Origin: Heteronotia binoei
Lineage: Eukaryota
Assembly: GCF_032191835.1 (NCBI RefSeq)
Contig: NC_083227.1
Span: 27,714,001 to 27,778,000 of the forward strand
DNA length: 64,000 nt
Direction of reading: 5' to 3'
In this document: piece by piece, positions 1-63,140 of the stretch
Position numbering within the stretch: the stretch's first letter is position 1
How the letters are laid out: each line of letters starts with the position of its first letter
Notes under the pieces: generated by a model
Databases searched by the model: none
Seen by the model: only the letters and a program-made list of their open reading frames with translations
What the model was told of the DNA's origin: nothing
Made by a program: the position numbers and the translations under genes

Positions 1-517
1 AGGATTAGTATACGATCTCTTGCCCAGGCTTCAGCTTTCTGAAGATCTTGTATATTAGGACTGTTTGGCAAGGAGTTCTCATAAGCAGAGTTAGCAGTGT
101 CTGCGACTTTTGGGAAAGCAGATTGGATAGCAGAGAGTTGTTCCTTAATAGGAGTCAAGAATCGATTTATTTCAGCAAACATGTCTTCTTTAAGAGACGC
201 AAATAAGTCCTGGAATTCAGCAGGAGGAGTTATAGGTGAGTTTGTTTCCATTTCATCATCATCGGCGGCCCTCTTAGTTTCAGTTTGTTTTTGTGATGCA
301 GTTTTTTCCACTGTGTTCTCAGGCTTGAAACAAGTCTTTGCTACGCTTGTTTTTGCAGGAGATTGCTTCCCCTCCCCCCCCCCCTCAGTCTCAGAAGGGT
401 TCCCCATTGATGCTGAAGCAATAAAAAAGCCTTGGGAAAGATTTATGTTGGCAATTTAGGTAGTAGGGGAAGAGAGCTCGCCTAATGTGCATCCACACAA
501 CTGACGCCCCACCCCCC
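1..517 (-). mobile_element. 5' end of a probable L1 LINE (short 5'UTR plus start of ORF1, ATG at 407, open to the window edge)
   Basis: The minus frame from ATG 407 reads MGNPSETEGG...EFQDLFASLKEDMFAEINRFLTPIKEQLSAIQSAFPKVADTANSAYENSLPNSPNIQDLQKAEAWARDRILI with no stop to base 1. It has a low-complexity N-terminus then a heptad-like coiled coil, as in non-mammalian L1 ORF1p. It begins with a G-run at ~517, exactly where similarity to the paralogous ZNF ends stops. It is absent from the ORF track, probably because it runs off the window. Confidence 0.6.
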
Positions 518-1981
518 CTTTGTGTGTTCTTTGATGTTGTATCAGGTAGCATCTCCGTATGAATCTTTTCCCACAGTCCCTGCATCCATATTTTTTCTTT
601 TTGCTGTGGACTGTATGGTGTTCTGTAAGCCGTGACCTGACGGCAAAGTTCTTTCCACACTGCAAGCATTTAAATGGCTTCACTCCTGTGTGGATACTTT
701 GATGTACATTAAGGCTTGTGCTGTGACTGAACATTCTCCCACAATCCAGGCATTTATATGGCTTCTCCCCTGTGTGGATTCTTGCATGTGATGTAAGACC
801 TGTATGGATACGGAAACTCTTTCCACACTCCAAGCATTTATATGGCTTTTCTCCTGTGTGGACGCTTTGGTGTACCTTCAGGTGTGAGCTCTGACTGAAG
901 CCTTTACCACATTCCTGGCATTTATAGGGTTTCTCTCCAGAATGGATCCTTTGGTGGGAAACAAGGTGTGGTCTCTGAGTGAAGCGTTTTCCACACACTG
1001 TGCACTCGTAGGGTTTCTCCCCTGAGTGAATTCTCTGATGTGAAGTGAGGGCTGAGCTCCAACTGAAGGTCTTTCCACACTCCAGGCACTCATATGGTGT
1101 CTCCTTTGAATGGAATCTCTGATGGGAATTGAGGGCTGTGCTCCATCTGAAGGTCTTTCCGCACTCCAGGCACTCATACGGCTTCTCCTTTTTGTGGATT
1201 CTCTGATGGGAAGAGAGGCTTGCACTAACAGTGAAAGTCTTTCCACACAGCAAGCATTTGTATGGCTTCTCCCCTGAGTGGATTCTCTGATGGTAAGTGA
1301 AGGATACGTTCCACCTGAAGGTCTTTCCACACTCCAGGCACTCATATGGCCTCTCCTTTGTGTGGATTCTCTGATGGGAGGTGAGAGCTGTGCTCCAGCG
1401 GAAGCACTTTCCACATTCCAAACATTGATATTGTTTCTCCTCTGAATGGATTCTCTGATGTAAATTCAGAGCACTGTTATAGCTGAACCTCTTGCCGCAC
1501 TGTGAACATTGGCACGGTTTTTGCCCTGTTTGGGTTCTTTTATGGGAAGTAAGGTTTTCACTCATACTAAAAGATGTTTTGGACTCTGAACTCATGGAAC
1601 GCTCCTCCCTCATATGGATTCTCTGGTGAGAAGTGAGGCTTACGAGCCTGCCAAAGTCCTTTCCACATTCAGAGCATTTGTACGTTTCATTCCCTGCGTG
1701 GATTCTCTGATGGGAAGAAATGTTGGATTCATAGCTTAAGACTTCTCTGTGGGCAGAATGTTTATTCCTCCTCTTTCCTTTGTTATATGGTTCTTGGGCA
1801 GGATTTTCAAGGATGCCAGTCTGGAAAACTACAGCGTGATTACCTAACTTCTCTGCTTTGCTTTCGTCCTGCCTCTTTGATTGTTTTGGATTCCTGCAAG
1901 GCCTTTCCTCCACTTCATGGTCGGTCATTATGAAAGAGACCACACATCGCTCGCTATAATTCTCACCATCCTGCCTGTTAC
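456..1981 (-). CDS. Gene 1 zinc-finger exon (13 intact C2H2 fingers plus degenerate N-terminal fingers)
   Basis: ORF 456-1943 has CxxC-x12-HxxxH repeats and TGEKPY-type linkers. Acceptor ttcttccaccag|GT at 1982/1981 gives a phase-1 start (G|GT AAC AGG CAG...) in frame with the ORF. Stop TAA at 456-458. Confidence 0.96.
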
Positions 1982-2369
1982 CTGGTGGAAGAAAGACTTC
2001 TGATTAGAAGGGGAAATAAGTAATCTGCAGACATAACAGAGTGGACTTTTCTGCAGAGTTAAGAAAGACCAAGTTATTTTATCCATTTAAATATGGTTTC
2101 TATACTGGGAATGGGATGCTGGGAGCTTTGGTGAACCTCGTCAATTGTTTTCATGGGGAGTTCAATGCTTCCCTGTAGATACTTTTAGCATTTCCCAATG
2201 ACTTTTCACACAGCAGTCTGATAATATCCAAATGTAAAGGTACAAAATACACTTAAGACTAATGGGTTTCATATAAGTGGTTTCATTTAATTCATTAAAA
2301 AATATATATGTTAACCATTCACAAAAATATATATATTTACCATTCCTTCTAAGCTGATAGAACAAAGCA

Positions 2370-2755
2370 GTAGGCAAGTGTACCTTTAAGACCTTTATTC
2401 AGAATGTAAGCTTTCATATGCTCTTAAGCAGACTTCATCAGACAAATGGGAATGGAAGCAGCAATTCTTAATATAAGTGGGCAGTGAGGAATCATGGGAA
2501 TGTTTTTAGCAGATTAAAAGAATCACAAATAGGGATCTGTGTTTGGTAGTGTTAGGACAAAACAGGGCTGAAAAAAACACTGGAGGGTGATAAAAAGCAG
2601 ACTGCTGTTGTAGGTGCGAAGTGCCATAAATCTAGGTAACATTCTGGCTTTGTTAAAGCTGACATTCTGAATAAAACTTAGTTGGTCTTAACGGTGCACT
2701 TGTCTACTGCTTTGTTCTATTGCTTCAGACCAACACGGCTGCCCACTTGGATCGC
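2370..2755. mobile_element. Penelope-like element fragments
   Basis: Contains the motifs agacttcatcagac, gaataaaacttagttggtcttaa and ttcagaccaacacggctgccc, which recur at 11165-11585, ~31000-31125 and (reversed) ~63770-63880. They resemble reptile Penelope-like termini as I recall them. Confidence 0.45.
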
Positions 2756-3060
2756 TGTAAGCTGAGTTAGCATGAGCCAGCTCACACATTTCTAATATCC
2801 AGCTCACACATTTTTGTCTTAGCTCAGAAAGGAGGACCCCAGAGCACAATAATGTATGCAGTAGCTCGCAACTTTAATGCCAGCAGCTCAGAAAGTAGAA
2901 TTTTTGCTCACAAGATTCTACAGCTTAGAGGGGGAACATTGCTCACAGTGTAAAAAAAAGGTTTGTTAGAGAACGGATTGCAGCACCACAGAAGACACCC
3001 ACGCAAAGATGAGGGCAGAGTTAGACAGCGGCTGGTGTTCACCTTTAAAGCCCTCTATGG

Positions 3061-3788: not shown

Positions 3789-3883
3789 CAATCTCCCATG
3801 AATCTCAATGAGAAAGGCACATAATAAATAACTTAAAACAAAGAAGCAGGAGTGGCAAAAAAACACAGCTTCCACATCTATCA

Positions 3884-4060
<177 letters not shown>

Positions 4061-4127
4061 TCACAACTAATTCATTCACTCCTGCTCAAAGATGTTTTTG
4101 CTCACAAGACAGAAAAAAAGAACACAA

Positions 4128-4378
4128 GAGGGGAATGGATAAACATACGGAGCAGAGCAGAGGTCCATCAGCAGCTATTAGTCACAGCTTATCGTTGGAA
4201 CTCCCTGTCTGGGGCAGTGATGCTCTGTATTCTTGTGCTTGGGGGGATGGGGCACAGTGGAAGGGCTTCTAGCCCCACTGGTGGACCTCTTGATGGCATT
4301 TGGTTATTTTGGCCACTGTGTGACACAGGGTGTTGGACTGGATGGGCCATTGGCCTATCCAACATGGCTGTTCTTATG
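4128..4378 (+). mobile_element. CR1 LINE 3' fragment
   Basis: Ends in ggccactgtgtgacacagggtgttggactggatgggcc...ccaacatggctgttcttatg, the same 3'UTR as the long CR1 copies at 13945 and 48208. Confidence 0.8.
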
Positions 4379-4670
4379 AAGCAGCCTTGTACTGAATCAG
4401 CCACTCTTCTATCAAGGTCACTACTGTCCAGTTCAGCCAGCAGAGGCCCTCCAGAGACTCATGCTGGGATTGAACCAGGGGCCTTCTGCATGCCAAGCGG
4501 ACGCTCTACCACTGAGCCACGGCCCCTCCTCCAGCAACTGCAGATATTAAGACAGGAACACTTGAAGGTGCTGCCTACTGAGTCAGCTTCTTGCAGGGCC
4601 CTCATAAGCAAAATTAGACTATTCTAAATCTACTGACTGCTGGCCCATCAAGGTCAGTGTTATCTATTCT

Positions 4671-5594
4671 TAGAGAACTGGAGTTAAAGTTCCTCACAAA
4701 ATGGTACAGAACACCAGCAACATTAGCCAATATGTTCCAGGGTTTGAATTCTAACTGTTGGCACTGTGGAAAGAAAAAAGGATGGTATTCCCACATGTGG
4801 TGGGAATGCTCAGAAGTTAAACCCTTTTGGGAAAAGGTAATAGAGCATATCCATAACTTTTTTGCTATAAGACCAACGATAGATCTAGATTTAATGTTCG
4901 GGAGCATATTAAATAAATACGGAACCAATAAAGAAGGGCTGGATTTATTCAAAGCAATGGTGCTAGCTGGCAAGGCTGTAATAGCCTTTGGCTGGAAGGA
5001 TAAAACCAAATGGACGGAGCAAAACTGGCATAATTATTTATCTGAATATGTTCAGTCGGACATTATAGCTATGCTTAATCGTGATGAACAATGGGGGTCA
5101 AAAACAAAAAGGATAAAGGAGAAATGGTTTCCATATTTAAAGTGGTCACTAGAAGGTCAACGGCGGAACATTCGGTGGAAGCTTCTTAATTTGTGCCCCT
5201 GGCTAGAAAGTTGAGCACGCAAGGGAGGGAGGGAGGGATTAGGGAAGAGAAAAATAGATTGATGAATGTGATAGGAAATCAAATCCTATGTATTAAAACA
5301 TTCTCATCCCTATCGTCAGGGCAGGAAAAGCTCGGAAGTGACAAGAATATGAAGGTGAAAGAGAAAATGGACTTAATAAGGCCTAGAAGGAGAAGACTAA
5401 AGAACGACGGTACTACTTGGAAGCAAGAAGACCTCAATATGGACTGATATAAGAACATTTAAACTAAAAGGACCGAGCAAGAATACTCTGTAAAGGGAGA
5501 TAGAGATTCAGATGTATACTCTGTATGAGAAAAAGGATAAGCTCAATGTAAATGACTAAAACAATAAATATATTCATATATATATAAAAAAAAA
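4671..5594 (+). mobile_element. 5'-truncated L1 (ORF2 C-terminus plus 3'UTR and poly-A)
   Basis: ORF 4657-5214 has KWYRTP...CWHC...HMWWEC...FW...KWFPYL, the L1 ORF2 cysteine-rich C-terminus. Poly-A at 5586-5595. TSD ATCTATTCT at 4662-4670 and 5595-5603. Empty site at ~61245 in gene 4. Confidence 0.9.
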
Positions 5595-6179: not shown

Positions 6180-6752
6180 CTGTAGGGAGACACATGTATC
6201 TTCAGTGGTTTACTTCATTTCGACCCCCTCTTTCTCCTCAAAGGGGACCAAAAGTGGCTCAAATTGTTTTGCTCTCCTGTGTTCTGTCCTCACAACTAGC
6301 CTGTGGGGCAGGTCAAATAGAGACCATGCAACTGCCCCAAAGTCAGCCAGCAGCCTTCCATGGCAGAGTACATAGCTGAACTCGGACCTGGTCAGAGACT
6401 ACCCACTAAACCACACTGCCTCTGATAGCTGAAGGAGATTTTAAAACTCCCCTTTTTAAAAATGTGGAGATATTTCTACCCTCTTATTTCATGCTGCCTT
6501 CCTCCCCAACAGGGGACTTGTAAAAAGCTTCCACTGGTTCTCTTTCTCTCAATTTTATTCTCACAACAACCCTGTAAAGCAGGCTAGACTGAGTGTGTAT
6601 CACTGGCCCAAGCTTCCACGACACAGAGGGGATTTGAACCTGGGCCTCCCAGATCACAGTTTGATATGCTAACCACTTCACCAGTGTTTGACCTTCTCAG
6701 GGAGAGGAGAAGAGAAATAAAGAGGGGGGGAAACCCTGTGTGTGAGAATTAC

Positions 6753-12920: not shown

Positions 12921-14029
12921 GTTCAGAAGGTTGCTTGAGACTGTTGCTATATTAGAGCTGCTAATCTCCTCAGGTGGGGTAGGGATGCCAACCTCCAGGT
13001 GGGATCCTGCAATCCCCCCAAATTATTATTTTTTTATTTATTTACTTTCAATTCATATCCTGCCCATTCTAAAAGCAGACTCAGGGTGGCTAATAGTCAT
13101 AATAAAACCAACAATCTCAGTTACAAGTATAAAATGATAAAACAAACAATTAACAATTTAAAATAAAATATTAGGTGCTATACAGAATCTTTAAGCATAG
13201 GCAAATCAGGTTATATTACATCTTCTGTTTATCTGTTGGTGGTCCTTCTAGTGATATTGCTCAGCAGCAGCCTTCTCCCACTAGTTAACTTTAGGCCAGT
13301 TGAAAAAGTTAAGTTTTACATGCCCTGCGGAATTGGGAGAGATCCTGCAGGGCTCTTACAGCTTCAGGGAGAGCATTCCACCTGGCCCCACTGATGGACC
13401 TCCTGGCACCTGGCTTTTTTGTTTTTTGGCCACTGTGTGACACAGAGTGTTGGACTGGATGGGCCATAGGCCTGATCCAACATGGGCTCTCTTAACGTTC
13501 TCGTCTCCAGAGGACAGAAGTCAGTTTCCCTGGGGGAAATGGAAGCTTTGGATGGTGGATTCTGTGGCATTGTACCCCACTGAATTCCCTGCCTTTCCAG
13601 AGGGGTCCATCCTCAAATCATCAGGAGCATCCTAACCTGGATCTGCAACCCTACCCCCCTGTTGCCTGGTCTCCCCCTCCCCCCGGCCACTAGTAGGGGA
13701 TGATTAGGGGTAGGGTTGCAGGGAGTGGGAGACCAGGCAACCCTAAGGTGGGCCCTGGAAATCTCCAAGAACTACAACTGATCACCACACTACAGAGATC
13801 AATTGTCCAGGAAAACACCTTGCTGCGATCGCTACCCTTCACCAAACCTCACCATCTCTAGGCCCCACCCCATGAATCACCTGGAATTGCCTTATCTGGA
13901 GTTGGCAGCCGTAGTCCTCTGCTACCGATCTCACTGGACATCTGAACATAACATAAGAGAAGCCATGTTGGATCAGGCCTATGGCCCATCCAGTCCAACA
14001 CTTTGTGTCACACAGTGGCCCAAAAAATT

Positions 14030-14194
14030 NNNNNNNNNNNNNNNNNNNNNNNNNNNNNNNNNNNNNNNNNNNNNNNNNNNNNNNNNNNNNNNNNNNNNNN
14101 NNNNNNNNNNNNNNNNNNNNNNNNNNNNNNNNNNNNNNNNNNNNNNNNNNNNNNNNNNNNNNNNNNNNNNNNNNNNNNNNNNNNNNNNNNNNNN
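14030..14194. other. Assembly gap (N run)
   Basis: 165 Ns inside the CR1 3'UTR. Confidence 1.
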
Positions 14195-15872
14195 CTGATG
14201 TACCTCCGCTCCATATTTTTATCTAACCCCCTCTTGAAGCTGGCTATGCTTGTAGCCGCCACCACCTCCTGTGGCAGTGAATTCCACATGTTACTCACCC
14301 TTTGGGTGAAGTACTTCCTTTTATCCGTTTTAACTTGACTGCTCAGCAATTTCATCAAATGCCCACGAGTTCTTGTATTGTGAGAAAGAGAGAAAAGGAC
14401 TTCTATTTTCTCCATCCCATGCATAATCTTGTAAACCTCTATCATGACACCCCACAGGCGACATTTCTCCAAGCTAAAGAGCCCCAAGTGTTTTAACCTT
14501 TCTTCATATGGAAACTGTTCCAACCCTTTAATCATTCTAGTTGCCCTTCTCTGCACTTTTTCCAATGCTATAATATCCTTTTTGAGGTGCGGTGACCAGA
14601 ATTGTACACAGTATTTCAAATGAGACCGCACCATCGATTTTTACAGGGGCATTATGATACTGGCTGATTTGTTTTCAATTCCCTTCCTAATAATTCCCAG
14701 CATGGCGTTGGCCTTTTTTATTGTAATCTCACACTGTCTTGACATTTTCAGTGAGTTATCTACCACGACCCCAAGATCTCTCTCTTGGTCAGTCTCTGCC
14801 AGTTCACACTCCATCAACTTGTATTTGTAGCTGGGATTTTTGGCCCCAATGTGCATTACTTCGCCCTTGGCCACAGTGAACCTCATCTGCCACGTTGATG
14901 CCCACTCACCCAGCCTCAACAGATCCCTTTGGAGTGCCTCACAATCCTCTCTGGTTCTCACCACCCTGAACAATTTAGTGCCATCTGCAAACTTGGCCAC
15001 TTCACTGCTTACTCCCAACTCCAAATTGTTTATGAGGAAGTTAAAGAGCATGGGACCCAGTACTGAGCCCTGCGGCACCCCACTGCTTACTGTCCTCCAC
15101 TGCGAAGACTGCCCATTTGTACTCACTCTCTGCTTCCTATTAATTAGCCAGTTTTTGATCCACAAGAGGACCTGTCCTTCTACTCCATGACTCTCAAGCT
15201 TACTAAGGAGCCTTTGATGAGGAACTTTTATCAAAAGCTTTCTGGAAGTCAAGGTAAACAACATCTATTGGGTCTCCTTTGTTCACCCCCTCAAAAAAAT
15301 GGAACAGGTGAGTGAGGCAAGATCTTCCCTTACAGAACCCATGCTGAGTCTTCCTCAATAACCCATGTTCATCAATGTGCCTACTCATTCTGTTCATGAT
15401 AATGGTTTCTACCAACTTTCCCGGTATTGAAGTCAGATTGACTGGCCTGTAATTTCCCGGATCTCCTCTGGAACCCTTTTTAAAGATGGGGGTGACATTT
15501 GCTACCTTCCAGTCCTCAGGAACGGAGGCAGATTTCAATGAAAGATTACATATTTTTGTTAGAATATCCACAAGTTCAACTTTGAGTTCTTTCAGAACTC
15601 TTCGATGTATGCCATCCGGACCTGGTGGCTTATTAGTTTTTAATTTGTCTATCAGTTGTAGGACCTCCTCTCTTGTCACCTCAATCTGACTCAGGTCTTT
15701 CAACACCCCTTCCAAAATAAGTGGTTCTGGAGCAGGCAAGCACTTCTCATCTTCCACAGTGAAGAGGCAAAAAATGGATTCAGCTTCTCAGCTATTTCCC
15801 TATCCTCCTTCAGTAATCCTTTTACCCCTTGGTCATCCAAGGGTCCCACTGCCTCCCTGGCTGGTTTCCTGC

Positions 15873-20182: not shown

Positions 20183-20456
20183 AGAAGATGAAGAAGATAT
20201 TGGATTTATATCCCGCCCTCCACTCCGAAGAGTCTCAGAGTGGCTCACAATCTCCTTTACCTTCCTCCCCCACAACAGACACCCTGTGAGGTGGGTGAGG
20301 CTGAGAGGGCTCTCACAGCAGCTGCCCTTTCAAGGACAACCTCTGCCAGGGCTATGGCTGACCCAAGGCCATGCCAGCAGGTGCAAGTGGAGGAGTGGGG
20401 AATCAAACCCGGCTCTCCCAGATAAGAGTCCATACACTTAACCACTACACCAAACT
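20183..20456 (-). mobile_element. Squam3-like SINE
   Basis: Same consensus as 3511-3788. Confidence 0.85.
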
Positions 20457-33163: not shown

Positions 33164-35461
33164 TCAGAAGGAATGTCCAGTCTTTAAGATGTACTCCTCC
33201 GTCTCCCAGGACCACCTCTGGAGTTTGGTGCTCTCCCTCCGTTGCTGCTGTTGCTGGGGTGAGGGGTCCATCAAAGGAGGAAATCCCTGGCCCCACATAT
33301 GGGGTTGGAAACTGCCCAGTTCCCACACAGTTGCTTCTTCTTTATCCTTCATTGGTGGAATGTTCCCTCTGTCCACTCTGTCCTCCCAGAAAACCACCTC
33401 TGGGGCTCCAAACAATTGCTGTCCCAGCTTCTTTTTGTCTCCTTCCTTCCTACCTCTATGCAACACCATGGACCTCGCAGAGACTGGCTGTGGTACATTC
33501 ACCTGCACCACTTGAACTGCCTTTCCCATTTTCTCCATAGCCCCCACACAGGTAGCATCGTCTAGGTCATCCACAATCACATGGGGTCCCTCCCATTCCA
33601 CTTTCCGTTCACCAGTATGAAGGGGTAGGAAATCCATCACCCTATCCCCTGTCTCAACTTCTGAGAACTCCACTTCCTGGTCCCTTGCCAACTCACACAG
33701 TGGTTCCAGCCTCGGGTCACTTTGAACCTCAGACAGGAACATTTCTGGCTGCCCCAGACTTCCTATCATCTGTTCCTTCAAGCCACCCCTAGTCCCACTG
33801 TTTCCAGAACACTCAGCCAAAGTTTGATCTGGGTTCTCCACCCCCTCAGTTGGTTTTTCAGTGTCAGCCAACTGAGCTCCTTCCTGCCTGGAAGTCTCCA
33901 CCGCATCCTGCTGCCCTTGCGGAAATTGGCACCCCTCTTCCCATTGGGCACACCCTCCTGCAGAGCTTGAGACAGGCTGGTCCTCCCCCTCCCTAGTTAG
34001 TGGTGAGGTGGCTTCCCTAAAGTTGCCTTCCTCCCCCCACCTTCCCCTGAGGGTTTGGCTTGGGTTCTCAGTCCCCTCGGTTGGTTTCTCAGCACTACCA
34101 AACTGACCCCCCTCTTGCTTGGAAGGTCCCACAGCTTCCCAGGACTCCTGTCTGCCCTGCTTCAAGACGACCTGTTTTGAGAGCGTCTCGGACGATCCCA
34201 CTTCCTGATCCACAGCTACTTGGTGAACCGGTTCCAACCTAAGGCCACTCCAGACCTCCTTCTGGAACCGCTCCCGTTCCCCCAAGCCTTCAGCTATGTG
34301 CTCCTCTGAGCCCACATTAGCCTTGCTGCTCTCAGAACCTCCTGTGAAATCTCCACTCTCCACCTTGGTCTCTTCAGCTTGCACATCCTTTATGCTAGAC
34401 AGGTTCCCTTCCTCGCTAGGAACATCCACAGCCTCCTGCTGCACTTGGGGAAAGCTACACCCCTTCTCCCCTTGAGAACACCCTACTCCAGGGCTTGAGA
34501 CAGGCTGGTCCTCCCCCTCCTGGGTGACTGCCCTCTCTTCGTCCTCAGTAACCTGGGTTGTTTCCCCCTCCCTGGTTGGTGGTGAGGTGGCTTCCTTAAA
34601 GTTGCCTTCCTCCTCCCACTTTCCCCTGGGGGTTTGGCTGTGGGTTACAGCATTGATAGAGTACTGGCCAACCAACAAATCCCGGCCCAATAACACTGGA
34701 ACTGTTTGTTCCTTCATTACCCCACATTCAGAATAGGATTTACCTTCTTGTGGAGCCAAACCCCTGAACTGCTTTCGGGAGTGGTCTGGCCCCAGTTTAA
34801 ACCTTTTAAATACAGTGGCCTTATAGGCCGCAAAAGTTATCCCCCCATCTTCCACAGGCATGCTGTAATAGATGGCTGAAAGCTCTCCAGTCAGGTTGCT
34901 ACAGAGGTAAGACATATAGTCCTCCTCTGCAATCCCCCACTGTTTGGCTGCCCTCTCAAAGTTGGAGAGGTACATGGAGGGGTCTTCTCCCTCTTTGTAC
35001 ACTGCAAAGTCTTTGGGGGTGACTTGGATCTCTTTGCTTAGTTCAGCTTCCAGACGTAGCACCTCAAGCTCATGGCGACGTTGCTCTTCCTGTTCCCGTC
35101 TGCGGATATCAGCTCTCTCTTTTTCTTCCTGTCTGCGGATCTCAGCTTTCTCTCTTTCCTCCTGCCGGCGGATCTCTGCTTCTTCCTGTCTGCGGATCGC
35201 ATCCCTCTCTGCTTGTCGTTCCTCTCTCTCTCGTTCCTCCTTGATACGCATTCTCTCCAGTTCCATCTGTAGCCGCAAGGTTGCTTCTGACTGGGTGGGG
35301 GCCACTTTTGCAGGTGCCCCTGCATGCTCAAGATGCTCCAACAGGAGGACTTGCATATCTACTACAGTCAGGTTGTCACACTCCAGCTCTTGCTTTGCGC
35401 ACTCTTCCTGGAGCTGTGGCTTTGTCATCTTCAGGATTTCCAGTTTCTTAGCACGCTCCAT
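33164..35461 (-). CDS. 765-aa retrotransposon polyprotein remnant (Gag N-terminus, PR end, repeat linker, IN GPY/F tail)
   Basis: E/R coiled coil, capsid-like YKEGEDPSMYLSNFERAAKQWG...LTGELSAIY...FKLGPDHSRKQFRGL, protease C-terminus VPVLLGRDL, and GPY/F-like GDRVMDFLP...WEGPHVI. RT, RNase H and the integrase catalytic core are absent. Confidence 0.8.
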   Translation of the reverse strand: MERAKKLEILKMTKPQLQEECAKQELECDNLTVVDMQVLLLEHLEHAGAPAKVAPTQSEATLRLQMELERMRIKEEREREERQAERDAIRRQEEAEIRRQEEREKAEIRRQEEKERADIRRREQEEQRRHELEVLRLEAELSKEIQVTPKDFAVYKEGEDPSMYLSNFERAAKQWGIAEEDYMSYLCSNLTGELSAIYYSMPVEDGGITFAAYKATVFKRFKLGPDHSRKQFRGLAPQEGKSYSECGVMKEQTVPVLLGRDLLVGQYSINAVTHSQTPRGKWEEEGNFKEATSPPTREGETTQVTEDEERAVTQEGEDQPVSSPGVGCSQGEKGCSFPQVQQEAVDVPSEEGNLSSIKDVQAEETKVESGDFTGGSESSKANVGSEEHIAEGLGERERFQKEVWSGLRLEPVHQVAVDQEVGSSETLSKQVVLKQGRQESWEAVGPSKQEGGQFGSAEKPTEGTENPSQTLRGRWGEEGNFREATSPLTREGEDQPVSSSAGGCAQWEEGCQFPQGQQDAVETSRQEGAQLADTEKPTEGVENPDQTLAECSGNSGTRGGLKEQMIGSLGQPEMFLSEVQSDPRLEPLCELARDQEVEFSEVETGDRVMDFLPLHTGERKVEWEGPHVIVDDLDDATCVGAMEKMGKAVQVVQVNVPQPVSARSMVLHRGRKEGDKKKLGQQLFGAPEVVFWEDRVDRGNIPPMKDKEEATVWELGSFQPHMWGQGFPPLMDPSPQQQQQRRESTKLQRWSWETEEYILKTGHSF

Positions 35462-37850: not shown

Positions 37851-38418
37851 CTGCATTAGGAAACTACATTATAAATAGTGTAGGTTGGGAGATAGGGACA
37901 GGATCTAATCTAACTAGCTATGGTGGATTCAGATGCAAAAGGCATGTCCTACATCCATCGTGCCAGAGATGGAGAGCATTCTCCTGCTTTGTGTAAGAGA
38001 GATGCGCTGGAACAAGGAAGTCTTGTCCCAAGAACAGCATTCTACTTCAAAGGATAGTATCAAATAGCAGGAAGAAAAAGATTATCTGTGTGTCCTGACC
38101 AATGATCTCTCTAAGCTGTGGAGCCTTGTGAGCAAAAATACTACATGAGCTACTGGCATTAAAGTTGTGAGCAACTGTATAAATTAGTGTGCTCTGGGGC
38201 CATCCTTCCTGAGCTAAGATAAAAATGTGTGAGCCAAGGGCTAAACAACTTGTGAGCTAGCTTACACTAACTCAGCTTAGAGGGAACACTGGTCCTGATA
38301 CCTCTCTGTCTCTAAATTTCTGGTGCTGCCTCTGGAGTCTGAGGCAGGGGATACCATACACTCTTCCACTTCCCACGCGGAGAACAGTACAAAGATGCGC
38401 CAGGGTGATTTGGCTGAA

Positions 38419-47650: not shown

Positions 47651-48207
47651 CCTCCCCCTTAAACCAAACCACACAAATACCAGAGGAGGAGCAGACTGTT
47701 CCAATTACATACAAATATGTATGCCACAAATATACCCACAGTGTAGAATGGTACATTGGAATGTATTTCTCTGGCCCGCCGCCCGGGAACTGGGGAAATC
47801 ACTCTGCAAAGCCAAGACCCCCTACTTCAAAAAATAACATGGCCTCCATGCTGAGAGGGGATGGAGTATAATGGCAGGGTCTCAATTAATCTCTGCACTC
47901 CATAATTAAAGATACATCTATCCATCAACCACCAAGCTTTGATATATTTTTTTCACTATATCTTATCCCAGACTTAAACCCAAACAAATGGTAACCATAT
48001 AAACTAAGCTTTTTGTTCCTGTTTGGCTCTACAATCTGTTAAAACATCTCATTATGCTGCATGCTAATTTCCTGCTCATCCTCTATTTATGTGTATGGAC
48101 CAGTGTTCCTGCTAAGCTGAGTTTAAGTGAGCTAGCTCACAATTTTTAAGCCTCTGGTTCACACATTTTGTCTTAGTTCAGGAAAAATGGCCCCAGAGCA
48201 AACTAGT

Positions 48208-49195
48208 TAACATAAGAGAAGCCATGTTAGATCAGGCCAATGGCCCATCCAGTCCAACACTNNNNNNNNNNNNNNNNNNNNNNNNNNNNNNNNNNNNNNN
48301 NNNNNNNNNNNNNNNNNNNNNNNNNNNNNNNNNNNNNNNNNNNNNNNNNNNNNNNNNNNNNNNNNNNNNNNNNNNNNNNNNNNNNNNNNNNNNNNNNNNN
48401 NNNNNNNNNNNNNNNNNNNNNNNNNNNNNNNNNCTCTGCTCCATATTTTTATCTAAACCCCTCTTGAAGGTGGCTATACTTGTGGCCGCCACCACCTCCT
48501 GTGGCAGTGAATTCCACATGTTAATCACCCTTTGGGTGAAGAAGTACTTCCTTTTATCCATTTTAACCTGTCTGCTCAGCAATTTCATCAAATGCCCATG
48601 AGTTCTTGTATCGTGAGAAAGGGAGAAAAGTACCTCTTTCTCTACTTTTTCCATCCCATGCATTATCTTGTAAACCTCTATCATGTCACCCCGCAGTCGA
48701 CGTTTCTCCAAGCTAAAGAGCCCTAAGCGTTTCAACCTTTCTTCATAGGGAAAGTGTTCCAGCCCTTTAATCATTCTAGTTGCCCTTTTCTGCACTTTCT
48801 CCAATGCTATAATATCCTTTTTGAGGTGCGGCGACCAGAACTGCACACAGGACTCCAAATGAGACCGCACCATCGATTTATACAGGGGCATTATGATACT
48901 GGCTGATTTGTTTTCAATTCCCTTCCTAATAATTCCCAGCATGGCGTTGGCCTTTTTTATTGCAAGTGCACACTGTCTTGACATTTTCAGTGAGTTATCT
49001 ACCACGACCCCAAGATCTCTCTCTTGGTCAGTCTCTACCAGTTCACACCCCATCAACTTGTATTTGTAGCTGGGATTCTTGGCCCCAATGTGCATTACTT
49101 TGCGCTTGGCCACACTGAACCTCATCTGCCACGTTGACGCCCACTCACCCAGCCTCAACAGATCCCTTTGGAGCGCCTCACAATCCTCTCTGTTT
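48208..49195 (-). mobile_element. 5'-truncated CR1 LINE
   Basis: ORF 48232-49206 is the CR1 ORF2 C-terminus (YKSMVRSHLESCVQFWSPHLKKD...LFSLEKRRLRGD). It is closely similar to the 13945 copy. Contains the gap 48262-48433. Confidence 0.92.
48262..48433. other. Assembly gap (N run)
   Basis: 172 Ns at the same CR1 3'UTR position as the 14030 gap. Confidence 1.
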
Positions 49196-50114
49196 CTCAG
49201 ATGCACTCAAGAGTTATTTAACTGCGCTTCGTTTCTTGGAGAGAAGGCCAAAGGCTGTGTTCAGAAGGCTGCTTGAGACTGTTGCTATACTAGGGCTACT
49301 AATATCCTCAGATGGGCTATGGATGCCAATCTCCAGGTTTCCCTAGAATTTCGGCTCATCTGCAGACTAGAGATCCATTCCTAGGGACAAAATGGGGGCT
49401 TTGGAGGGTAGACTCTATGGCATTGTACCCCATTGATTTCCCTGTCCTTTCCGGGGGGTCTATCCCCAAATCTACAGGAGTATCCTATCCTGGATCTGCA
49501 ACCCTACCTCCCACATACCCTGATAGTGGCTAGGGCAAACCAGGCAATCCTAAGGTGGGGTGTGGAAATCTCCTGGAACTACAACCGATCAGCACACTGC
49601 AGAGATCAATTGTCCAGGAAAGCAGGGTTCCTTTGGAGGGGCGACTCCAGGGCATGACACCTAGTTGAGATCCCCACCCTCCACCAAATCTCATCATCTT
49701 CAGCCCCCTCCCCTCACAAAAAAAATCACCACAGATTTCTCTATCTGGGATTTGGCATCTGTAGCTCTCAAGTAGTGCTTCTGATCTCACTAGTCATCTG
49801 GACAATAGATGCCTAGATAAAGGGATGTAGAATTCTGTAAACAGCTATAAACATCCTAAGACCTGATCTACAATGCCCCCTCTCAATAATAATAATAATT
49901 ATTATTAATAATGTATGGTTGCCAGGTCAGTGTTGGAAAATACTTGGAGACTTTGTGGGTGGAGCCGGGAAAGGGCAGGGTTTGGGGAAGGGAGGGGCCT
50001 CAGCATGGTCCAGTGCCACAGTGTCCACCCTTCCCAGCAGCCATTTCCTCCCGGGGAGCTGATCTCTGCCAGCTGGAGATCAGTTGGAAAGGTGGGAGAT
50101 CTCCAGGCTCCACC

Positions 50115-50274
50115 TGAATCATAGAGTTGGAAGGGACCTCCAGGGTCATCTAGTCCAACCCCCTGCTCAAAGCAGGAAACTCACAAATACCTCCCCCCAA
50201 ATTCACAGGATCTGCATTGTTGTCAGATGGCCATCTAACCTCTGTTTAAAAACCTCCAAGGAAGGAGAACCCAT
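50115..50274 (-). mobile_element. CR1 3' fragment (second subfamily)
   Basis: gaatcatagagttggaagggacctccagggtcatctagtccaacccc, same family as 55220-55663 and 62583-63140. Confidence 0.85.
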
Positions 50275-55066: not shown

Positions 55067-55219
55067 CTCTAGGCTGATCCTGCACTGAATAGGGGGTTTG
55101 GACAGATGGCCTGTATGGCCCCTTCCAACTCTATGATTCTACAATATAACTTGGGGCTTCTGTGACATATTTGACATCTGTAAAGCTTGTTGTATTTCAA
55201 AAACTCCTAGTCTGATCAT

Positions 55220-55663
55220 GGTGGTGGTGAGGGGTCCGGAGACCAAATCCTACAAGGAAAGGTTGAAGAAGCTGGGCTTGTTTAGCCTGGAGAGGCGGCA
55301 GAGAGGTGATATGATCACCATCTTCAAGGACTTGAAGGGCTGTCATTATAGAGGATGGTGTGGAATTGTTTTCTGTGGTCCCAGAAGGTAGGACCAGAAC
55401 CAATGGGTTGAAATTTAATCAAGAGAGTTTCTGGCTCAACTTTAGGAAGCACTTCCTGACGATTACAGCAGTTTCTCAGTGGAACAGGCTTCCTCAGGAG
55501 GTGATGGGCTCTCCTTCCTTGGGAGGTTTTTGAACAGAGGCTGGATGGCCGACAGTAATGAAGATCCTGTGAATTTAGGGGGAGGTATTTGTGAATTTCC
55601 TGCATTGTGCAGGGGGTTGGACTAGATGACCCTGGAGATCCCTTCCAACTTTATGATTCTATG
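55220..55663 (+). mobile_element. CR1 3' fragment overlapping the stop codon of gene 4
   Basis: CR1 ORF2 end (ggcttgtttagcctggagagg...) through the terminal ccttccaactttatgattctatg. The flanks rejoin to the paralog consensus gatcat-t-tctatg. Confidence 0.9.
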
Positions 55664-62582: not shown

Positions 62583-63140
62583 TAGAATCATAGAACCATA
62601 GAGTTGGAAGGGACCTCCAGGGTCATCTAATCCAACCCCTTGCACAATGCAGGAAACTCACAAATGCCTCCCCCAAAATTCACAGAATCCTTATTGCTGT
62701 CAGATGGCCATCTAGCCTCTGTTTAAAAACTTCCAAGGAAGGAGAGCCCACCACCTCCCAAGGAAGCCTGTTCCACTGAGGAACCGCTCTAATGGTCAGG
62801 AAGTTCTTCCTAATGTTGAGCTGGAAACTTTTCTGATTTAATTTCAGCCCATTGTTCTACGTTCTATGGTCCTATGTTCTGGGGCCACAGAGAACACTTC
62901 CACCCCATCCTCTATATGACAGCCCTTCAAGTACTAAGAAGATGGTGATCGTATCACCACCTCTCAGCCACCTCCTCTCCAGGCTAAACATCTCCAGCTC
63001 CTTCAACCTTTCTTCATAGGACCTGGCCTTCAGATCCCTCACCGTCGCCCTCCTCTGGACCTGTTCCAGCTTGTCTATATCCTTCTTAAAATGTGGTGCA
63101 CAAAATTGAACACGATACTCCAGGTGAGGTCTTTCCAGAG
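62583..63140 (-). mobile_element. CR1 3' fragment
   Basis: agaatcatagaaccatagagttggaagg tail followed by the reverse strand of the CR1 ORF2 end. Confidence 0.88.

Follow-up and report, generated by a model that had tools for sequence, protein, structure and literature searches.

A probable L1 insertion with a short 5′UTR at the very end of the coding region of a KRAB zinc-finger gene in Heteronotia binoei

Genes of the KRAB zinc-finger (KRAB-ZNF) family usually repress retrotransposons, among which the LINEs are copied 3′ to 5′ by target-primed reverse transcription. Published L1 elements include forms with short 5′UTRs (0.14-0.23 kb), inter-ORF spacers of 257-1,032 bp and conserved G-rich 5′ ends (PMC5381506). 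KRAB genes adjoining transposon coding sequence are represented by KRABINER, in which KRAB is combined with a mariner transposase (bioRxiv 10.1101/2020.05.07.082677); in fusions of this type, which are expressed, the host gene is spliced to captured transposase exons. Furthermore, gene breaking and premature polyadenylation in A-rich L1 ORFs have been described (Perepelitsa-Belancio and Deininger 2003, as cited in PMC5381506). Here, we analysed a stretch of 64,000 nucleotides from Heteronotia binoei (the window) in which the last zinc finger of one KRAB-ZNF gene, gene 1, is followed directly by L1-like sequence. We consider it highly probable that the very end of the KRAB-ZNF coding region was hit by an L1 of known structural type and that the frame match between gene 1 and the L1 ORF1 is coincidental. 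As in KRABINER, a KRAB gene adjoins transposon coding sequence of the same orientation, but at this locus a stop codon parts the two frames.

Gene 1 is located on the minus strand and has a KRAB-A exon at 3881-4012 (Pfam KRAB box, E = 1.7e-19, 69.6 bits) and, on the same strand, a tandem C2H2 array, the combination characteristic of KRAB zinc-finger genes. Its zinc-finger open frame (1943-456, minus) encodes 495 residues with 13 C2H2 fingers, and the host part of this last exon spans 518-1943 (minus), up to ...QHQRTHK, with matches to zf-C2H2 and zf-H2C2_2; an AG acceptor near 1985 is probably the true start of the exon. Four paralogous ZNF genes are present on the minus strand of the window, among which the last fingers of gene 1 are shared only with gene 4 (57359-55659, minus). 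At the same place, gene 1 reads CAC AAA GGG GGG and gene 4 reads CAC AAA GAG GAG; host sequence on the far side of an L1 insertion would be expected to resemble AGGAGGAATCACAG of gene 4. The alignment of the two genes reaches CACAAAG, is ambiguous through the G-run at 518-512 and gives way to complete divergence beyond. The ancestral 3′ end is inferred from only ~15 nt, because gene 4 is interrupted by another repeat ~5 codons further on. The stop codon of gene 4, TAG (55661-55659, minus), is found inside the first bases (TAGAATCATAGAGTTGGAAGGGA...) of that repeated element, at 55659-55663, and the window holds copies of the element at 62589-63043, 50116-50274 and 55078-55141. Genes 1 and 4, both of them long-array paralogs, end in different transposon sequences, 2 to 9 codons past the last finger.

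An earlier note on this DNA, made from the sequence alone, had placed foreign sequence from ~517 downwards after the last finger of gene 1, and the match to gene 4 indeed ends at 518/517, with a G7 homopolymer (512-518) exactly at the junction. The tail and stop codon of gene 1, which the note likewise took to be foreign, consist of 20 codons past ...QHQRTHK and a TAA at 458-456 (minus), with A as the next base. Its further description of a single TAA, 16 sense codons (IANINLSQGFFIASAS) and an ATG at 407-405 in the frame of gene 1 is exact in its coordinates, and the ORF that starts at this ATG, 48 nt beyond the gene 1 stop, continues without a stop for 135 codons, as far as the window edge. 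The insertion point lies two codons beyond the final zinc-finger histidine of gene 1, and the finger array is therefore intact.

Homology searches support the assignment of the 135-codon ORF (3-407, minus), which is cut by the window edge, to an L1-type ORF1 protein, of which it covers the N-terminus and the coiled coil; the reading comes by way of relatives. In an exhaustive phmmer search of the 135-aa peptide against 1.84 billion cluster representatives, eight matches were obtained at E ≤ 1e-3 (4.6e-7 to 9e-4 in this 1.84-billion-protein library). Proteins P0002, P0003, P0004 and P0005 were matched at E values of 4.6e-7 to 1.7e-4 and 33-37% identity; the best match is P0002 (E = 4.6e-7, 37% identity), and the other three proteins are 291-338 aa long. 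The similarity covers residues ~42-134 of the window peptide and stops precisely at the point from which the relatives go on into '…NLKLRGxPE…' and a globular C-terminal half. The profile built from the relatives matched the solved structures of human L1 ORF1p (2ykp, 2yko) and mouse ORF1p (2ldy) over the RRM and CTD, as well as P0013 (E = 1.2e-19), which itself scores above the Pfam Transposase_22 gathering score (26.3 vs 22.4 bits). Thus, the similarity to L1 ORF1p profiles that was anticipated for the peptide at 407-1 was obtained through the relatives' profile (E ~3e-7), whereas a direct Pfam match was lacking: a Pfam scan of the 135-aa peptide returned no family, even at E = 10. A word-indexed protein search with the peptide also gave no match, full-length ORF1 proteins being outside the length range searched, and an ESM Atlas feature search produced weak leads to unnamed chordate clusters (0.90) and to L1 ORF1 clusters (0.80-0.82). 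The coiled-coil pattern noted earlier reappeared in the AlphaFold2 model, in which long helices are predicted at residues 63-112 and 117-134 (pLDDT 76-94) and residues 1-60 are disordered, so that an N-terminal coiled coil, as expected of the ORF1p of the L1 clade, is present. The order of coiled coil, RRM and CTD known from human and mouse L1 ORF1p (Transposase_22) is shared by the relatives, whereas the window peptide is confined to the fast-evolving N-terminus and coiled coil, without direct similarity to the human and mouse proteins; the RRM would begin just past ORF1 codon 135, where the window ends.

The contigs that carry the relatives reveal what follows ORF1 in such elements. An L1-type ORF2 endonuclease is encoded ~0.74-1 kb past ORF1 on contigs L002, L003 and L005. 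In L002, ~740 nt separate ORF1 (307-1287) from a downstream ORF that begins MALSNLKVGTLNCRGLN… and matches L1 endonuclease structures (1vyb and others) at E = 1.9e-11. The downstream frame of L003 matches residues 78-257 of human ORF2p (E = 1.7e-21), and in L005, a chromosome of assembly GCA_051903775.1, the start of the endonuclease is found at 4717-4833, ~830 nt past ORF1. The presence of the ORF2 endonuclease after ORF1 in all three identifies the relatives as members of the L1 clade whose two ORFs are separated by a long spacer; a spacer of 0.74-1 kb ahead of an APE-endonuclease ORF2 is shared with the published short-5′UTR L1s. No L1 endonuclease was found in the 64-kb window. The inter-ORF spacers of L002 (1288-2026) and L005 (~3870-4716) contain G-rich stretches and long spurious ORFs, in agreement with the description of lizard clade 2. 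L005 also carries, at 6254-6455 and 2483-2695, two SINE-like repeat families that occur in the window at 66-85% identity, with many matching sites, for example 38109-38292, 48100-48208 and 20230-20313. The comparison suggests that the genome holding the closest ORF1 relative may belong to a related host lineage.

Upstream of ORF1, the L1 5′UTR in the window measures 110 nt (408-517, minus); it bears no likeness to gene 4 past 518-512, and its length fits the short 5′UTRs of the relatives. At its start is a G-rich 5′-terminal motif, GGGGGTGGGGCGTCAGT (500-516, minus), which is identical at 15 of 17 positions to the start of the L005 5′UTR. In L005, the region upstream of the ORF1 ATG consists of a T-run followed by GGGGGCGGGGCGTCGGT, and in the window the foreign sequence at 516 reads GGGGGTGGGGCGTCAGT; the GGGGGTGGGGCGTC motif would mark the 5′ start of the L1 copy. 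MAFFT alignments of the 5′UTRs displaced the terminal motif and were replaced by local alignment with shuffles, in which the motif score against L005 was reached in 2 of 500 shuffles, and the similarity to L002 alone was insignificant (355 of 500). The sequence GGCGTC lies upstream of the ATG by 101 nt in the window and by 105 nt in both L005 and L002. Accordingly, there is a defined 5′ terminus common to family members, as in the L1 clade, and this terminus coincides with the end of the paralog homology. The suggestion of an intact 5′ end of a sense-oriented L1, also put forward in the earlier note, is upheld by the ORF1 homology combined with the terminal motif at an equal distance from the ATG. 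These observations support the presence of what appears to be the complete 5′ terminus of a short-5′UTR L1. Its completeness would mean that the whole template RNA was copied. No second copy of 1-511 was found within the 64-kb window.

Set against the published short-5′UTR L1s, the element has a 5′UTR of ~110 nt with a G-rich, Sp1-like start and an ORF1 with a disordered N-terminus and a coiled coil. The 5′ terminus of the published frog consensus is GGGGGCGTGGCC and that of the window element GGGGCGTC; from the lizard clade 2 consensus, GGGNGCTGCGCATGC, the window element differs in part (PMC5381506). Two other assignments were considered and rejected. The tail GGVGRQ...PTT could have been native to gene 1, with the L1 starting further down, but this is ruled out by the terminal motif of the L1 family, which begins at 516-517. 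A domesticated, ORF1-derived host gene of the L1TD1 type is unlikely, since the L1 5′UTR terminus is attached.

The insertion has changed the end of gene 1. The final 20 codons of the gene are now read from the first 59 nt of the L1 5′UTR (517-459), and its TAA (456-458, minus) is likewise supplied by the 5′UTR. Between this stop and the window edge, the only canonical AATAAA is inside ORF1 (166-171, minus), so any gene 1 mRNA would carry an L1 3′UTR; as predicted from the sequence, the mature transcript would continue into the L1 as its 3′ untranslated part. Gene 1 thereby resembles genes whose C-terminus, stop codon and 3′UTR are supplied by a transposable element: it ends in L1 sequence and meets its first downstream AATAAA within ORF1. 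The AATAAA in ORF1 is a candidate poly-A signal. For the words of 1-1200, the share contained in any public sequencing run was at most 16%, and for those of 1-620 at most 8%; an Rfam search of 1-3000 returned no meaningful match.

The history that we favour would begin after the duplication that yielded the paralog gene 4, with the L1 arriving later. Target-primed reverse transcription would have extended to the end of the template RNA, leaving the 5′ terminus complete, and the host frame would have come to run 59 nt into the L1 5′UTR, gaining a new 20-residue tail and a TAA with the finger array unharmed. A full-length element would lie beyond the window, and the ORF1 start codon, 48 nt past the stop, would share the frame of gene 1 by accident, without any fusion product. 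Points against this history are that no more than 135 codons of the element are visible, that identity to the relatives is at most 37% with no direct Pfam match, that the 64-kb window has no second copy, and that the junction falls in a G7 run. The window indeed ends at ORF1 codon 135, before any ORF2, which would suit an ORF2-less or internally deleted, HAL1-like derivative that kept the L1 5′UTR and ORF1. We regard such a derivative as unlikely, because the ORF2 endonuclease is present in all 3 of the relatives with enough downstream sequence, and because a template copied through to an intact 5′ terminus was copied completely, and that template is usually a full element. The G7 homopolymer located exactly at the junction could instead point to an assembly chimera formed at the G-run near 517, in which case gene 1 would not really adjoin the L1. 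However, the paralog homology ends exactly where the L1 5′-terminal motif begins, which is the signature of a real insertion, and assembly collapses normally join sequences within repeats rather than at the terminus of an element; we therefore consider a chimera very improbable.

There remains the question of the frame shared by gene 1 and ORF1, which lie in one frame and are separated by a single stop and 16 sense codons. This arrangement might be functional, with read-through or a stop-less allele giving a KRAB-ZNF-ORF1p fusion that takes part, for instance, in the control of L1. Two frames coincide by chance in 1/3 of cases, and multiplication by ~0.46 for 16 stop-free codons gives ~0.15; the arrangement is thus expected by chance in ~15-33% of such insertions, which gives substance to the earlier caveat that the register could be a 1-in-3 coincidence. 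For vertebrate termination, UAA with A as the next base ranks with the most efficient contexts; UGA-CUAG is the context favoured in known cases of read-through. The stop of gene 1 is UAA followed by A rather than a leaky context (UGA with a 3′ CUAG or similar). In addition, a G11 homopolymer (374-384, minus; codons GGG GGG GGG) is located between the ATG and the homologous, conserved part of ORF1, and the frame link between gene 1 and ORF1 is for this reason sensitive to homopolymer length and fragile. A functional role of the frame match is accordingly extremely improbable in our estimation, and coincidence is the most likely explanation of the in-frame ORF1 downstream of gene 1. We give hardly more credence to a view of the insertion as the standing precursor of such a fusion, realized in some individuals or by low read-through. 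If it were true, a zinc-finger repressor extended by the ORF1p coiled coil could co-assemble with ORF1p multimers on L1 RNA, and KZNF genes would have a new way of gaining a domain from a retrotransposon protein, through stop loss instead of exon capture.

With the insertion as the preferred reading, the locus provides a base-resolved case in which a retrotransposon rewrites the C-terminus, the stop codon and, presumably, the 3′UTR of a KRAB-ZNF gene. In addition, it records an L1 lineage whose 5′UTR measures ~110 nt and whose G-rich terminus is conserved. The insertion is a well-known, ordinary kind of event and holds no pointer to new biology; its value for annotation is that it places the true end of gene 1 and an L1 5′ terminus.

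The window contains several other features. Between genes 2 and 3, a 765-aa ORF (33164-35461, minus) is rich in charged residues and coiled-coil-like, without a Pfam match. Related reverse-transcriptase fragments (Pfam RVT_1) of another LINE family, parts of which are masked as N, are located at 14008-15757 (minus) and 48232-49206 (minus). On the plus strand, at 4657-5214, a 185-aa ORF with a Cys/His motif resembles the C-terminal region of human L1 ORF2p (residues ~1100-1231, E = 2.5e-9); this L1 3′ fragment is antisense to gene 1 and lies just upstream of its KRAB exon.
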